A stretch of DNA of 64,000 bases from assembly GCA_964252035.1 (NCBI GenBank), contig OZ176209.1. One strand, 5' to 3'. Positions 1 to 15,634 of this stretch are shown piece after piece. The notes beneath the pieces were generated by a model. That model ran no database searches. It was not told the origin of the DNA and saw only the letters and a program-made list of their open reading frames with translations. The translations under genes and the position numbers were made by a program. Origin of the DNA: Podarcis erhardii (lineage: Eukaryota). How positions within the stretch are numbered: the stretch's first letter is position 1; the number at the start of each line of letters is the position of its first letter.

Positions 1-520
1 GCTATTTATTCCACAATAAAAAGTACTGAAAATAAATGGGTTTCCATTTAATGGAAATTCCTTCTCTGATTCTCAGTAGTACTCTTAATTTTCTTGAGGG
101 AATTTTAGAAGTATACTCATAATTGTTCTGTGTGCAATAAAATAGAACTTGAATGATTAGGCAGCAAAGGAATTTCTTTAATAACTCCTCCATTTTGATG
201 TACTTTGTCATGACAGTTGTCTGGTGCCTGCAAAACAATGAAGAGTAACACCTTGTCTCGGGGCATGCTGACTGAAATATGACATGTTATTGATGGAGGA
301 ATGGTAGCAGCTTGGATTGAATTCATAAACATCTCTTAGCTTGGTTACAAAGTTCAACAGCCTCTGGCATCTCTCCTTGTTCAAAGTGTGCACATGGCAC
401 TTGATCTTTGTGGGTCTTGCATGCTGCTAATCTGAATGTGAAGGGAAAATACTTTCTGCAACGTTCTTATTCCCGTCATCCTTCTGAATGAAAATAATCA
501 TTATACAGAGCATCTAACTC

Positions 521-656
521 ATGAAGGCAGAAGGTCCACAGCGACGTAGGTTTTCTTCATGTGCTGGAGTTTCGCTGCCTCCACGGGCTGATGGTCGGAA
601 ACTTGTCCGGAATGCTTCATTCGGAGGATACAATGCACTTTCACCAGTCTTCCGAG
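521..656 (+). CDS. OSBPL8: Coding exon 1, ORP5-type N-terminus MKAEGPQRRRFSSCAGVSLPPRADGRKLVRNASFGGYNALSPVFR(G)
   Basis: ATG 521 has an in-frame TAA at 515-517. Candidate acceptor TACAG ends at 508. Donor CGAG|GTTTGT at 657 is phase 1, matching the next exon. Colinear with the recalled ORP5 N-terminus MKEEAFLRRRFSLC...DPRKLTRN. Confidence 0.85.
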
Positions 657-2984
657 GTTTGTTTTGTCTCACTTTTTAATGTTCTCATGAAAATATTTAT
701 TGTAAAAGCTTCTACAAATACTACTTTTTTTAAAAAAAAAGCAATTTTCTAAGCTGAAAAAGCACCTGGATTCACGTTGAATAAAATAAAATGAGATTTG
801 GAAATAATGATTCATGGTTGGCATGTGTTCTCGGGCAGCGCTTTCCTTAAGTTCAGCATTAAGAACGAAGTGCTTCATTGTAGATTGCGTGTGATTGTAC
901 ATGATGATGATGATGATATTACATAATGAGAATGATACTTGACTGAATATGGGTGGTGTCTTTCTTACCTGCAATTTAAGAGAATTTTCAACATACTGGA
1001 ATCTACAACCAAATGATTTTCAAGTAAACGGAACATGGCTTCTAATTAGGTGCAGGTCCTTTTGAAATCTGGAGTAGACAACATAGCAGGACTTTTGACT
1101 GTTAGAAGTAATCTTCAAATGTAAAATTTGAGGCCATGTTAATCAGTGTTGTGTCCTTTAATCCTTACATTCCTTAATAATGTAAATAATAACTTGGAAA
1201 TACTCATAATGTTGTATATCTAGTTTGCATTGGTTCTAATGGACTTGATCAGTCTTGAAAATGCACAATTGCAAGGTTACTGTAAATGTGTGAGTTAGTA
1301 CTACTGTAAAAATTGATTTATTTAAGACAATTGCAACCTTCAAGCTAATTGCATTTTAATGTACCTATTAGTTGTCTACCTCTTCTTTTGTGGTTAGTAG
1401 TTTCAACACAAACATGATGTGAATCCCCTGGAAACTAGAAATAATGCTCCCTCTTTTCATGTTTTTGTGTGTGTAAGTAATAAACATTTATACAACAAAA
1501 CAAAGGACAAGCAGATTTGCTGTACTTCTATAACTGCAGCTTCAATCACTTATTGCAGAGTTCTGAATGTAACCACAACATTGCATGTTTCCTTCTCATA
1601 GTTTGGTTTTCAGGATATCTGAACCAAGCCAGTAAGTTGCATAACAACTCTTGTAAGGAAGTATGTTATTATTTTTACTGAGTTTTTGCCATATCTTACT
1701 AAAAGTCCAGTTTGACATTTAGAGTGGTTTAATACTCACAGACAAAGTGAGATGTATGTGTGCTAGATCTCAAATGCAAGACAGTGTAGTTAACTTAGGT
1801 ACTGCAACCTTACCTTAATTATAGCCTTTTAGATGAATTATCTGGGCGAGGGAAACACAGTATCTGTTATTATGAATTTCATGCTGTTGAATATGTCAGT
1901 GGTTGACATTTGATTCACATTCCTTCTTTCTTTTTTAAAACCAGTTTATGTGCGTGTAACTTGCTCACTGACTTTGTATGAAGAGTAGAGCACCCTAGAC
2001 ATTAATTGTGGTGTCATGAGCCCCATTCTCTAGACATATCACAAGGTACATGAATGCTTGGAGCAGTAAGATGTTGCGCACTGGCCCTTGCCCATACAAA
2101 TATCCAAAGAAAGGCTGTGCATGTAGAAGTTGCTACCAAATCTCAGTTAATCCCAAATTGTTCTAGGGAATTTCCCAAGCTCCTGGTAAGTTTACCAGGA
2201 AGATAACATTTGCAGCTAATACTTTCCTGAGGAATTTCTGATTAAGATAAGTGAATTCACTTGCCGCTTTGTGGTTACTACGATCTGCCTTTATTAACAC
2301 AAGGAATAGAAATGGCTTGTTAGCACTACTCACCTTACTTGGCTTTGCACAAGCTCTGCTTCATTCTGTTTTATGCTCCATTGATTAGTTCACATCCGTG
2401 GATGTGTGTGGTGGTATGTTGTGAATATGATAATGCCTAATCCTAGCGGCTTACTCGATCATGAATTTATTATTAGATTCCACTTCCGTCTTATTTTTCT
2501 GATGCCTGATGAGAAGGCTTTGCATTGTTGGAACTGCTGTAACCTGGGGGTGGGCTGGCAAGCCAGTTCTCCTGTGGACTGAAACTCTCTGTGCTTATCT
2601 ATGTTGTGCTATGTGCTACTAGTAGTTGGATATTTTCATATAACTTAGCAATTGAGGTACCTCTGAATGCCTGGAAGGTAAAATACAAATGTATTAAATT
2701 GGGACAGGGTTGACAACTACCATTCATGCTTGGAACTTTGTAGGTTGGGAACATAACCACTTTTGGACCCTAGGTCTCACACAACATGGCTTTAATATTA
2801 AACAAAAAAAAATCCTAGTTGTAAAGGAATTACAAAAACATTTGGTGAACAAATGGTGACATATACACCATGTCCCTAAGCATATTTGGTCAGAGTTTTA
2901 ATAGCTTTGACTTATTTAGGATTTCAACCTTAATGGCATATGGGATACACTGATTTTTTGAAACCATTTCAATTTCTCTTCAAG

Positions 2985-3055
2985 GTTTTGACAGAGGGAA
3001 GGATGATGCCTCACAAAGTAAAGATGATTCTACACAATCAATGTCAAAAAGCAAG
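2985..3055 (+). CDS. OSBPL8: Coding exon 2 (GFDRGKDDASQSKDDSTQSMSKSK)
   Basis: TTCAAG| acceptor, |GTGAGC donor, 71 nt. Matches ORP8 GFERGKEDISQNKDESSLSMSKSK. Confidence 0.95.
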
Positions 3056-5206
3056 GTGAGCACCTTAACCTTCAGACAGCATAGTTCAGTTTGATGCTTC
3101 TAAGTGAGCTTGGATACGTAGTTGCAATTAATTTAATATTTTCCCTACCTATCTCATTTGTGGCTTATTTTAAATAGTAAGGTGAATTATGTTTATGTGT
3201 AATCTTTGTTTATAGCACAAAAGTAAGCACTAATATTTGTTTTTAAAGCCAGTTTGTGAAAAAAAGTGAGGGCTGCTCAGGAGATTCAGTGGGCCTTTGG
3301 TGAATTCTATTAGCTACTTGGTTAAGTATGAGGTATATTATTTTAGATGAACTAGCCATAGCTGGCAATAGGCATTGGAGCAGCCAGTGACAAGGTAGAA
3401 TCCACAAGTAAACCTGCAACTTATGTGCATTTCACTTGTGCACATTCAGCTTTACATGCATGTCAATTAAAAATAGAAAGGGGGCGGGGTTCTGGGGGAA
3501 ATGACTTTGGCAATCCTCTCTGCCGTTGAATCCAATGAATTTTGACTATACATGATTTTGGTTTTAGGCGCAATCCCCAGAACATAGCCCCCAGGTAAGT
3601 TGCGGGTTCTACTGTACTACATGCTATATGTTTTATGGTGAGTGCAACTCACACTTGAACAAGATACAAACTACCAAGCCATAGAACTCTTCTCAGGGTT
3701 CAGGCTTGGTTTTTGGCTCCCATCCAGACCACCCACTCGTCCCCACCCCAGGCACAACTTCAGCTTCTGAACAGCTTCATCTGCTTCTGTTGGAAAAGAT
3801 ATAGAGCAGAGTGCCTTGATGATGACTCATCCAAAATCCTTTGATGATGGCACCCAATGACTTCACTTAGGTGTTAAACAGCATGGAAGACAGCATTGAT
3901 CCCCACAATATAATTGCCATGGGAACAAACAGAAATCTCCCAGAGTGGTTCTCTAAACTTGGGCCATCAAATAGGGACAGAACCACAGTAATACACTGCC
4001 TCCAACTTCTGTTTAATGGAGCCAGTCCATGAGGATACCATGGTCAATGATATGAAAAGCTATTGAGAGCTTAAGGGCAATCAACAAGGTTGGAGTTCCT
4101 CTCCTCATACAAATAAAAAGCCAAGGTGACCAAAGCTTTCACTGTGCCAAATCCAGGTTAAGAAAGTATGTACTTTCATATGTGTACATGTGACTGGTGG
4201 ATTAGAGCTTTTGTCACATTTTCTTGAGATTGGTGGGTGTTTATGTGTGTGCGCTCTCTCTTTCCCTCCCTCCCTTCCTCTGTCTGTCTCTGAAAACTTA
4301 GTAAAATAGTTTTGGGTTTTTTTTGCGGGGGGGGGGGGGATAGCCTTAAATTTAGCCAGAAGATTTGGCTGGTTCCTGGGCATCTCAGTATTAAACAATT
4401 TGTGTCAATAAAACGTGTTTTGCTGTACAGGGTAAGAAATGGCTTGTAACTCATCCAAAGTTTATTTTTAGTCAGTACAAGATGCTGAGACGTTCCTAAT
4501 GAGTTAACTTGGTTACATTATCAACCAATGTTGAGTGATGATAGACTGCTAGAATAACTCTGCAACCCTGCAGGGTTCATCTGTCATTCTCAACCAGTCC
4601 ACCCCCCCCCAAAGCTATTGGGTGGCACATGCAGAGAAACCATTTTTAGAACTTTCAAGGCAGGAGAAATAAATGCTGTGTGATGCCACAGCAGCATGTT
4701 TAATAAAGAAATATTTTCAGTGGTAAAGGCACTTAAGTGAGGTGAAGTTATGGATCTCTAGAATTAGGGTGTTTTGGGGAAAGCAGGCTGTAATAATGTA
4801 TTTGAATAACACTGATATAACAGATTCAGGGAGCAGATCTTAGTCTGGAGAAATTCCATGTTTTCCTTGAGGGGCCAGGGGGTAAGTAAGTGCGTAGGTG
4901 GCACTGGACAAGAAAAGCTATTTGTGTTTGCATGTGTAAAGCTCAGTGGACAATGTCAAGTTTTTGACTCCTTTCTTCAAACTGGGTTATTGTTAAATGA
5001 TATGACAGAAGAAGCCAACGTTTTGAAGTACCACATGAAGGATTCATTTACAAGCTCTTTCTATGCCTTGATTAAATGAAGCGACATAAAGGGAGCAAGC
5101 AGCAATCTGAAAAACTTGTAGCTTCTATGTTTCGCTTGAAGTTTGACTGAACAGCAACTGCTCTAATCCTTCATTAATTATTTCCTTGTGTTATGTATAT
5201 TTTCAG

Positions 5207-5302
5207 TCAGAATCTAAGCTTTATAATGGCTCTGAGAAGGACATCACTGCCTCCTCCCCCAGCTCCTCTACTACCAAGCTCACAAAGAAGGAGTCTCTTA
5301 AG
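5207..5302 (+). CDS. OSBPL8: Coding exon 3 (SESKLYNGSEKDITASSPSSSTTKLTKKESLK)
   Basis: TTTCAG| acceptor, |GTGAGT donor, 96 nt, phase 0/0. Confidence 0.96.
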
Positions 5303-6940: not shown

Positions 6941-7151
6941 CTTTATAGGAAATTGGTTTGAAGGCAATATTATGTAATGCCACTTCTTCTGATAGATAAA
7001 CAGCTGTCCTAAAACTTTCGTTTTCTTCATACTACTATGGATTGAACTAAGCATGTTGCAGTTTGTTTTGACCTTTGCATTTATAGCTCCACGACTTCCA
7101 TTTTCTTAAATTTCTTACCCTCTGAATTTATTGTTCATTCATTATTTACAG

Positions 7152-7253
7152 GTTCAAAAGAAAAATTACAGGGAAGAGAAGAAAAGAGCCACAAAAGAAC
7201 TACTTAGCACAATCACAGACCCATCAGTCATTGTTATGGCTGACTGGCTGAAG
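7152..7253 (+). CDS. OSBPL8: Coding exon 4, polybasic segment (VQKKNYREEKKRATKELLSTITDPSVIVMADWLK)
   Basis: TTACAG| acceptor, |GTCAGG donor, 102 nt. Matches ORP8. Confidence 0.97.
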
Positions 7254-7854
7254 GTCAGGAATTATGTGTAATATTGAGTGAAAGTTGTAGCTGTTGTTTA
7301 TTTGTCAGAATGTAAAAGAATTCAGATCCTAGTTGGTTGCTGATTGATGTTTACCACTAAGAAAAACTCCATTAATTATATCCCAGAGGCTCAGTACTTG
7401 ATGCATAGGGAACCAACGGGGACACCTTGCCACTGCTTTACAGTGGTTGCCATGGCTACATCTGTCTGCAGTGACTAATTGAATTGGTGATCACTTTATA
7501 TTAAATACAATGTGAATTATGAGTGATTACTCTGGAAACAGGAAACTGTTACTTTAAAACAGATTCCTTCTTGCAGACTCACCAAGCCACATTTCATACA
7601 TGATAGCATAAAGCTCTGGGAGTTTCAAATGTGTGAATTTCAATGATGATATGAATAGCTCCAGGAAGAGGATGTAAATGTAGCACGGGTATCAAATAAT
7701 CTAAGCTGCTTAATGTCAGTGTGTTTCTTGCATGTCACAGGAGAATTAAATTACTTCTGCTAATCAATAAAATATTCCACCTGAACTCTTGTTGTTTGTA
7801 CCTTGTTTTCCTGTATTGGCTAAAGTGTAAGGGCTGTTAACATACTACTTTTTT

Positions 7855-8040: not shown

Positions 8041-8410
8041 GCTGGTGTCAGTTGAGACATATTCTGCAGGCATGGGAATCATCCCAAGTTTCTGTATTTA
8101 TTTACATATGTAAAATAACTTCTGACATAGTAAATTAGTTTTCATTTTAAAGGAATACTGTCTGCATGGTGCAGTTGATATCCTTTGGTAATTTGATTTA
8201 CTAGTTATGCTCAATTAACAGTATACAAACATTAAGATGTGTTGTGCCTATAAGTATTTGTGTGAAATTTGAATAGCTCTTCTTCATTTTTGCAATTCTG
8301 AACTGGTTGTGTATATTGTAAGAAGGGTCTTGCTGCTTGGCCAGGAGGGATTGGGACTGAAATGTACTTAAAATGTACTTAAAATTAAAAGTCTCTTTTT
8401 TTCTGTTAAG

Positions 8411-8614
8411 ATTCGAGGTACACTGAAAAGCTGGACCAAACTTTGGTGTGTGTTGAAACCTGGAGTACTGCTTATTTACAAAACTCCTAAAAATGGCCAG
8501 TGGGTAGGAACAGTACTTCTGAACGCTTGTGAACTCATTGAGCGGCCTTCAAAAAAGGATGGATTTTGTTTCAAACTTTTCCATCCTTTGGAGCAATCCA
8601 TCTGGGCTGTTAAG
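8411..8614 (+). CDS. OSBPL8: Coding exon 5, PH domain (IRGTLKSWTKLWCVLKPG...FHPLEQSIWAVK)
   Basis: GTTAAG| acceptor, |GTAAGT donor, 204 nt. Overlaps ORF 8450..8671. Confidence 0.98.
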
Positions 8615-8940
8615 GTAAGTGAATATGTATTCTTAATGCAGGTAGCGTTGAATAGAACATTACACCAATGACACATTAAACCTATCTGCATTGTTAAATA
8701 TTAATGATCACAGTGTGCTTTCAGTTGTCAGCTCAGCTATCCCTTTGCTAAATTTGCTTGATTTTCTAACATACCAAAGCCCTGAGCAGTGTGGTTGCAT
8801 TGGAGAAGTATTGGCCTTCTGCATAATCCTGTGTGGTCTTTATTGTGAAAGCAGCCACTAATCATAATCTTTGCCCATATAAAATGTGCACAGTAATGCT
8901 GTGTTACAGCTCCTGAATCCCTAATGGATAAGGGATTCAG

Positions 8941-9296
8941 ATGGTTAAGGGGTGATATGATAGCCATGTTCAAATATATAAAAGGATGTCACATAGAGGA
9001 GGGAGAAAGGTTGTTTTCTGCTGCTCCAGAGAAGCGGACACGGAGCAATGGTTCCAAACTACAAGGAAGAAGATTCCACCTAAACATTAGGAAGAACTTC
9101 CTGACAGTAAGAGCTGTTCGACAGTGGAATTTGCTGCCAAGGAGTGTGGGGGAGTCTCCTTCTTTGGAGGTCTTTAAGCAGAGGCTTGACAACCATATGT
9201 CAGGAGTGCTCTGATGGTGTTTCCTGCTTGGCAGGGGGTTGGACTCGATGGCCCTTGTGGTCTCTTCCAACTCTATGATTCTATGATTCTATGATT
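8941..9296 (+). mobile_element. CR1 LINE 3' fragment (5'-truncated)
   Basis: Open RT C-terminus RLRGDMIAMFKYIKG...FLTVRAVRQWN.LPR..ESPSLEVFKQRLD, followed by (ATTCTATG)n tail. Confidence 0.95.
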
Positions 9297-14345: not shown

Positions 14346-15288
14346 GTTAAAAAAAAAAAGTGTTTTTATGCAGTAGTAATGTTTTGGTTTTAATATTTTG
14401 AAACTAAAATTGTACCTTGGAAAGGCAGTCATTTTGGCAATATTTGAATTGCAAAATGGTTTCCTTTGCCTTTTTATCACACACTTTCTTGTCTTATGTC
14501 CCTCTAGCTGTAGGTCAGTTTTCAGACCACTGGTAGATTAATTGCTTTGGTAGGTTAATTTTTAAAGCATATCTAAGCATAAGAGGCCACCATAAAAAGC
14601 AAAAGAAACTGGTAGGATTTGGCCAAGGGACTATGGCTGGCTAAAGTTGATGCAGATTTAGAAATAACTTGACAAATCGAAACGCTAAGAGCCAGCCAGT
14701 CACCTGAGCCGGCCCAAAGGTAAACAGAGATTATTCTAGATTGACAACTGATAAGAGCAGCGAAGACATGCCCAAGGGCATTAATCAAGGTGAAACAGAA
14801 ATTTTGAATCTCATGGTTGAGTTAGAAGTTGTAGTGTGTTGCAGGTTATCTAGCCTTGGTTTGATAAATAGCTGTTTGGTGTTTTTTAAAAAATAGTTCA
14901 CGTTTCCTAAGAGCAGCATGTGAATTGCTTCACATGTTATATTTTGGCACTTGCTCATTCATGGCTGCAGGTTCCGGGTTTTAATTTAAAAAACAAAAAC
15001 AAACAAAAACAAAACTGCTTAGGGATAAATTGCCCAGAGTTGAGTCAGTTGGAGTGCTTTCTCTTAAGTTGTTCTTTGGAGCATTGTGTATTTTTGAAGG
15101 GTGGGTAAAGCAAGTTTACTGACAAACATGGGCTCTGACCAATGCAAAATAAATATGAATTCACCCCACGTCATAGAGAAGGCATTGGCAGTTTTGAACC
15201 ACAGTGACTGAAACCAAATACCTTCTGCAAATGTGCTCTTTCAATTAGTATCATGTTTATGTTCTATTCTCCTTTGTTGTTGTTGAAG

Positions 15289-15473
15289 GCAGGAGAAGCT
15301 TCCCAAACAGAAACAGTATCAGAAGAGAACAAAAGCTTGATATGGACATTACTAAAACAAGTACGCCCAGGAATGGACCTCTCCAAGGTGGTGCTGCCCA
15401 CGTTTATTTTGGAAACTCGATCTTTCTTGGATAAACTCTCTGATTACTACTATCATGCAGACTTCTTATCTGA
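15289..15473 (+). CDS. OSBPL8: Coding exon 9, ORD lid ([61 protein letters not shown])
   Basis: TTGAAG| acceptor, |GTGAGT donor, 185 nt. Inside ORF 15253..15477. Confidence 0.97.
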
Positions 15474-15634
15474 GTGAGTTGATTTCATTCCTCTACAATA
15501 AAAACTAACTTGATGTATCCGCTCAGTATTTTGTTTTCAGAAGCATTTTTTAACAATGCTTTCTTAATAAGTTGTAAAACATGTCACGCTTGCAATAAAT
15601 CATACTTCTAGCCCCTGGAATTTTCCTATCTTTT

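Follow-up and report, generated by a model that had tools for sequence, protein, structure and literature searches.

An alternative 5' exon of OSBPL8 in Podarcis erhardii that probably preserves an ancient ORP5-type first coding exon

The different engagement of ORP5 and ORP8 with the plasma membrane has been attributed largely to their N-termini: the acidic N-terminus of ORP8, as present in ORP8L, inhibits membrane binding, whereas ORP5 instead carries "a cluster of basic arginines" (PMC5940310). Two ORP8 variants, ORP8L and ORP8S, are distinguished in review, together with up to three bands on blots (PMC7356933), and their N-terminal variety is produced by alternative 5' exons that precede the polybasic/PH region and alter the charge of the protein (PMC7356933; Sohn et al. 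2018, PMC5940310). The locus described here resembles this arrangement. It lies in a stretch of 64,000 nt from Podarcis erhardii (NCBI GenBank assembly GCA_964252035.1, contig OZ176209.1; one strand, 5' to 3'), referred to below as the window. Our analysis indicates that OSBPL8, the ORP8 gene, has an alternative 5' exon in this window, here termed E_alt, which probably contains an ancient ORP5-type first coding exon and would provide ORP8 with a basic N-terminus; we place the probability of this reading at about 0.68.

Four RNA runs (X1, X5, X6 and X23) were aligned to positions 1-3300 of the window. The joint from 656 to 2985 (reported as 654 to 2983, "skips 2328, GT..AG, cut +2"), which the initial annotation had anticipated from the letters of the sequence, was present in an X1 contig of depth 50 and in an X5 contig of 3536 nt and depth 41 that covers about 3 kb more of the ORP8 body downstream; in X23, two raw RNA-seq reads span it. 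The acceptor of this joint, behind AG at 2983-2984, is also joined to the canonical ORP8 exon, the end of which (TCA TTT AGT CCA GGA ACA GTC CAT GGC CAT/G, with a slash marking the exon boundary here and below) reads ...SFSPGTVHGH/G, was seen as a loose end before 2984 in X1, X6 and X23, and has its mammalian counterpart in ...SLSPASPHSQ/G (P0032, P0075, P0083). A search for this canonical exon in the window found no match, and it is therefore located upstream. Contig depth in X1 favours E_alt over the canonical junction (50 vs 12.7), and the path assembled in X5 includes E_alt. E_alt is a genuine alternative 5' exon, the usage of which varies by sample. The initial annotation had cast the ORP5-type exon as the start of the gene; it is used as an alternative start, but it is not the sole one, the canonical exon upstream being joined to the same acceptor.

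The boundaries of E_alt required a correction. An exon start at 509, behind an acceptor AG at 507-508, had been proposed, but neither a joint nor a loose end occurs there, and this AG is absent in two of the genomic contigs used for comparison below (L001 and L003). The RNA contigs show E_alt beginning at 214/217 (X1 record 1 and X5 record 4, contiguous over 214-654), behind an acceptor AG at 215-216 in the context tactttgtcatgacag/TTGTC, and it is preceded in RNA by another exon ending ...GAGGATGAGGATTCCCAT(CAG), which was searched for in the window, is absent from it, and lies beyond it. In RNA, E_alt is thus a second or later exon, and relative to a start at 509 the correction adds about 300 nt with 10 upstream ATGs. 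The donor of E_alt is CGAG/GTTTGT at 656/657; the exon that begins at 2985 has its last base at 3055, not 3056, and is followed by GT at 3056-3057.

The gene in the window is the OSBPL8 (ORP8) orthologue. In tblastn searches, fish ORP8 fragments were 94.7% identical at the polybasic exon (7146-7259), compared with 71% for bird ORP5, and 97% identical at the PH exon (8405-8614), compared with 91% for bird ORP5. The ORP8-specific exons GFxRGK...SKSK (2985-3055) and SESKLYNG (5207-5302) are both present, as in the mammalian proteins P0032, P0075 and P0083, and Pfam identified a PH domain and the start of an Oxysterol_BP domain (15286-15477) in the window.

The coding frame of E_alt opens at ATG521-523 and reads MKAEGPQRRRFSSCAGVSLPPRADGRKLVRNASFGGYNALSPVFR plus one G, amounting to 45 codons and 1 nt (136 nt), with a TAA in frame one codon before the ATG and a phase-1 donor that fits the exon at 2985; all of these features, listed in the initial annotation, are legible in the sequence. 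The peptide is basic (net charge +7) and contains RRRFS and RNAS motifs. A frame of 45 codons is by itself unremarkable in a window with 83 open reading frames (ORFs) of at least 70 amino acids, and the E_alt ORF exceeds chance because of its homology and splicing, not its length. BLASTP aligned the window peptide with the ORP5-like isoform X3 of Corvus kubaryi (P0034) at 21/43 identical positions with 0 gaps (41.6 bits, E 5e-11), which bears out the roughly 21/45 ungapped identities given for human ORP5 in the initial annotation, and hhalign matched a profile of 11 ORP8 exons (A2) to a profile of four ORP5 exons (A3) with 99.2% probability and an E of 1.2e-19. The RRxS motif singled out at the outset proved invariant in both paralog families (R9, R10 and S12 in 11/11 ORP8 exons; R10, R11 and S13 in 4/4 ORP5 exons), and RNAS is invariant in the ORP8 exons.

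Exons of this type are widespread in fish. A phmmer search with the 45 residues against 1.84e9 (1.84 billion) representative proteins returned 18 matches with E down to 1e-11, of which 17 carry an E_alt-type exon at 61-79% identity, the named sources including sturgeon, tuna, turbot, tongue sole, arowana and icefish; the remaining match (P0017) is an unrelated repeat protein and not a carrier of the exon. A further search with the turbot sequence (P0012) led to NCBI ORP8 models that open with an E_alt-type exon, as well as to ORP5 N-termini from the crow (P0034) and from fish (P0035-P0037). The ORP8-like models of Rhincodon typus (P0096) and Sinocyclocheilus rhinocerous (P0025) start with this exon and continue with a GFxRGK-type exon, and ORP8 isoform X5 of Tachysurus ichikawai (P0026) has the same start followed by a variant partner exon, FERKEE. 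At the whale shark RefSeq locus, an in-frame TAG lies 15 nt before the ATG, the coding part comprises 47 codons and 1 nt (142 nt), the donor is CAG/GTTTGT, and the phase-1 partner exon is found 7.5 kb downstream, so that the genomic layout, upstream stop, donor and phase are all shared with the window. Furthermore, the arowana (P0016) and sturgeon (P0002) models combine the canonical MSQRQGKE exon and an E_alt-type exon at one locus. From shark to sauropsids, ORP8-type exons are 52-76% identical to the window and carry the motif RNASFGGYNEL.

Other searches with the exon were less informative. The 45-residue peptide had no match in Pfam; word-based protein searches returned fish fragments alone, with matches limited to 0.55-1.75 times the query length, which excludes full-length proteins; and no mammalian match was found in the protein library, a silence that says little given that the library also lacks the window's own short ORF. 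An ESM Atlas feature search yielded IS110 transposase clusters alone, which were judged spurious and discarded. Among the fish models, the ab initio predictions P0002 (Acipenser sinensis) and P0007 (Thunnus orientalis) place the MSQRQGKE and MMKEEG exons in one continuous frame, an arrangement that is unverified and may be an artefact, and in teleosts the region before the ATG of the exon is open over long stretches (P0009-P0013, P0022-P0024).

Selective constraint was assessed with the window and four genomic contigs (L001-L004) judged tetrapod- or sauropsid-like by similarity. Pairwise ratios of nonsynonymous to synonymous divergence (dN/dS) were 0.19-0.41 at dS of 0.5-1.0, with an excess of third-position changes; pairs that include the window gave 0.19-0.29, with Fisher p of 4e-3 to 4e-5 in three comparisons. 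The donor AG/GTTTGTT is invariant and the upstream TAA conserved in all four contigs. In L001 and L002, ATA stands in place of ATG521 and a new in-frame ATG occurs seven codons downstream (MRRRFS...); these two contigs (L001:767-952, L002:911-1096) also have an intron of only about 270 nt before the GFDRGK exon, compared with 2328 nt in the window. At the level of sequence comparison, these results show the E_alt ORF to be coding sequence of ancient origin, maintained by purifying selection, and a paralog of the ORP5 start exon. Positions of the features are given in Table 1.

Table 1. E_alt and the neighbouring OSBPL8 features in the window, with the basis for each assignment.
Feature	Position	Strand	Basis
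E_alt, alternative 5' exon of OSBPL8, 440 nt	217..656	+	RNA contigs X1, X5; splice-site letters
E_alt coding part, ATG521 + 45 codons + 1 nt, phase-1 end	521..656	+	Sequence, homologs, dN/dS
TAA, in-frame stop	515..517	+	Translation; kept in four other tetrapod-like contigs
5' leader within E_alt, 10 upstream ATGs	217..520	+	List of upstream ATGs, DNA alignment
Candidate ancestral acceptor, AT in window	478..479	+	Alignment to L001, L003, L004
Intron from E_alt to GFDRGK exon, GT..AG, 2328 nt	657..2984	+	RNA in X1, X5, X23
Shared ORP8 exon, (G)FDRGKDDASQSKDDSTQSMSKSK	2985..3055	+	RNA, tblastn; acceptor common to E_alt and canonical upstream exon
Next constitutive ORP8 exon, SESKLYNGSEKD...TKKESLK	5207..5302	+	RNA loose end behind 3055, tblastn

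Two further features of the gene were observed in the window. An in-frame microexon of 27 nt (3568-3594, + strand; GCGCAATCCCCAGAACATAGCCCCCAG, translated as AQSPEHSPQ), flanked by AG and GTAAG, sits between the exons at 2985-3055 and 5207-5302; it is included in six X23 raw reads and an X6 contig and skipped in nine X23 reads, and its peptide is not present in any of the 145 ORP8/ORP5 proteins fetched. A fragment of the 3' ORF of a CR1-type long interspersed nuclear element occupies 8924-9214 (+ strand) within an OSBPL8 intron, an insertion that points to a sauropsid genome.

The closest relative of the E_alt coding part outside ORP8 is the first coding exon of ORP5 (OSBPL5), with which it shares an MK-E start, an RR(F/L)S cluster, the D-RxL-RN pattern, a length of about 45 codons and a terminal PG whose glycine codon is split by the intron; this ...PG/ boundary occurs in P0025, P0026 and P0096 as well as in the ORP5 proteins P0034-36. 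These features, common to both exon families, imply that the exon is most likely older than the duplication that gave rise to ORP5 and ORP8, and that ORP8 kept it beside its other starts. The two families nevertheless differ. The second half of the ORP5 exon reads RNL(S/F)(Y/F)G(G/A)DND, compared with RNASFGGYN(E/A)L in the window, and its net charge is +1 to +3 instead of +7. Moreover, the ORP5-type exon is the start of every ORP5 model fetched, whereas OSBPL8 has other alternative 5' exons besides E_alt, which, unlike the ORP5 exon, is joined to the ORP8-specific GFDRGK exon. Closer still are the NCBI models P0096, P0025 and P0026, which share with the window the succession M(M)K..RRRFS..RKLIRNASFGGYNE..G, a GFxRGK-type exon, SE(S/T)KLYNG and the PH domain; these are predicted models from other species, however, and the window lineage differs from them in that its exon is extended 5' to 217 and contains many upstream ATGs. 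The claim that an ancestral ORP5-type start exon is retained on an ORP8 body is supported by the junction reads, the ORP8-like body, the exon homology, the RRxS motif common to both families and these models.

Relative to the described ORP8 variants, the predicted E_alt isoform is, by its sequence, a third N-terminal class of ORP8 and neither ORP8L nor ORP8S: both of these contain the MSQRQGKE...SPASPHSQ exon, which the E_alt isoform lacks entirely, and tblastn of canonical ORP8 N-termini against the window found no similarity, in agreement with the initial annotation. In the arrangement that we propose, E_alt occupies the intron that follows the canonical N-terminal coding exon (...SFSPGTVHGH) and precedes the GFDRGK exon, and splicing from 656 to 2985 places ATG521 in frame with the rest of ORP8. 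In the protein predicted from this transcript, the acidic or neutral N-terminus of ORP8L/S (net charge -3/-4 for ORP8L and +1 for ORP8S) would be exchanged for a basic peptide of 45 residues (+7), which corresponds in ORP8 to the product of the ORP5 first coding exon; NASFGGYNALSPVFR is an example of a tryptic peptide that would be specific to it.

Several observations weigh against this proposal and would be consistent with a different role for E_alt in the window lineage, in which transcripts that include it are for the most part non-productive or regulatory, the exon having been lengthened 5' to 217 and having gained upstream ORFs, with the intact ORF surviving as an inherited relic. The leader (217-520) contains 10 upstream ATGs, each the start of a short ORF, and the upstream exon has at least one more, while ATG521 itself is in a weak Kozak context (C at -3, A at +4). 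The end of the upstream exon, GAGGATGAGGATTCCCATCAG, can be read as ...SSEDEDSHQ, similar to the ...SSDESQ that precedes LTPGKMSQRQ in mammalian ORP8L, and judging from the approximately 30-33 nt that are visible, the exon spliced to 217 is possibly the first coding exon of ORP8L. If it were coding in that frame (...CAT CAG/), translation would meet a premature TGA in E_alt (280-282) and the transcript would appear unproductive, yielding lower ORP8 output or very little ORP5-like protein. The alignment with L001-L004 points in the same direction: DNA conservation begins only at about 455-499 and reaches 665, covering the coding part and a short leader; positions 478-479 correspond to YYAG in L001, L003 and L004 but are AT in the window, and the AG at 215-216 that serves as acceptor in the window is AA in L001 and L002. 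The stretch 217-479 looks lineage-specific, and 478-479 may represent a former acceptor; its loss in the window lineage, with an acceptor 263 nt upstream now in use, would have brought in most of the upstream ATGs (nine). Lastly, the canonical exon dominates in X23 (12 reads vs 2 for E_alt) and in X6. On the other side, E_alt is the deeper form in X1 and the main assembled path in X5, which is unusual for substrates of nonsense-mediated decay; X1, X5, X6 and the window are identical over the coding part, compared with five differences in the 304-nt leader (a weak contrast, with about two expected); and dN/dS in pairs with the window remains at 0.19-0.29. A poison cassette coupled to nonsense-mediated decay would likewise be difficult to reconcile with an ORF that is itself constrained (dN/dS 0.19-0.41) and kept from shark to sauropsids. 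We therefore consider a mainly non-productive role rather unlikely, and lean, with modest confidence, towards ATG521 being translated in P. erhardii.

Explanations that deny the ancestral character of the exon, or its place in OSBPL8, fit the data much less well. An ORP5-like start exon on an ORP8-like body, in a window without the canonical N-terminus, might suggest a third paralog of the ORP5/8 family with an ORP5-type start rather than the OSBPL8 orthologue, but this is contradicted by the RNA that joins the canonical ORP8-type exon (...SFSPGTVHGH, corresponding to mammalian ...SLSPASPHSQ) to the acceptor at 2985 and by polybasic and PH exons that match those of fish ORP8 at 94.7-97% identity; the presence of the GFxRGK and SESKLYNG exons, together with the arowana and sturgeon models in which the MSQRQ and E_alt-type exons share one locus, also makes it very improbable. 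Still less probable is a recent transfer from OSBPL5, by exon capture or gene conversion, for which the similarity itself is the only argument: the ORP8-type (RNASFGGYNEL) and ORP5-type (RNLSYGGDND) exons have each been kept from fish to sauropsids and yet are distinct, which implies an old split, and the window peptide has a higher identity to shark ORP8 (63%) than to bird ORP5 (48-49%). The least credible alternative is that the ORF arose by chance within a 5' exon that does not code for protein; although short ORFs are common in the window and Pfam recognised nothing in the peptide, such a reading is contradicted by the homology (phmmer E 1e-11, hhalign E 1e-19), by dN/dS well below 1 and by the conservation of start, phase and donor.

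If ORP8 does acquire a basic N-terminus through E_alt, its behaviour could be affected in two ways. Considering the published inhibition by the acidic ORP8 N-terminus and the arginine cluster of ORP5 (PMC5940310; PMC7356933), the predicted isoform might behave more like ORP5 or ORP8S at the plasma membrane, although we regard this as doubtful. The two invariant serines of the exon both lie in basophilic-kinase consensus motifs and would be candidate regulatory sites. RRRFS fits the PKA-type R-R-x-S consensus, and RNAS fits R-x-x-S; no phosphorylation data were found for either motif. A broader and equally tentative proposal is that vertebrate OSBPL8 encodes both an acidic "ORP8-like" and an arginine-rich "ORP5-like" N-terminus, the latter being the major mRNA in some tissues, translated, constitutively located, as ORP5 is, at contacts between the endoplasmic reticulum and the plasma membrane, and switched by basophilic-kinase phosphorylation of the RRRFS and RNAS serines. 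Were this true, the division of labour between ORP5 and ORP8 in mammals would in other vertebrates be partly a matter of isoform choice within one gene, and the ORP5-like isoform could possibly account for the third ORP8 band on blots.

The initial annotation described the exon as hidden, being missing from the track supplied with the window. In the literature searched, no paper was found that mentions the E_alt N-terminus, its peptide motifs or relevant alternative first exons of OSBPL8. The exon is not hidden everywhere, however: automated NCBI annotation already has the isoform for a shark and two teleosts, and it is new only to the searchable literature and, going by the initial annotation, to the track of this genome. 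Nor is this a new kind of system; what it adds to a known gene is a third class of N-terminal isoform. Its interest lies in what a purifying-selected ORP8 exon with an arginine cluster implies, namely that a non-acidic, ORP5-like form can come from the ORP8 gene itself. In work on fish, amphibians, reptiles and birds, this would bear on how results from knock-outs, antibodies and isoform-specific rescue are read; it would also fix the ancestral state of the ORP5/8 N-terminus, and points to two invariant serines as testable regulatory sites.

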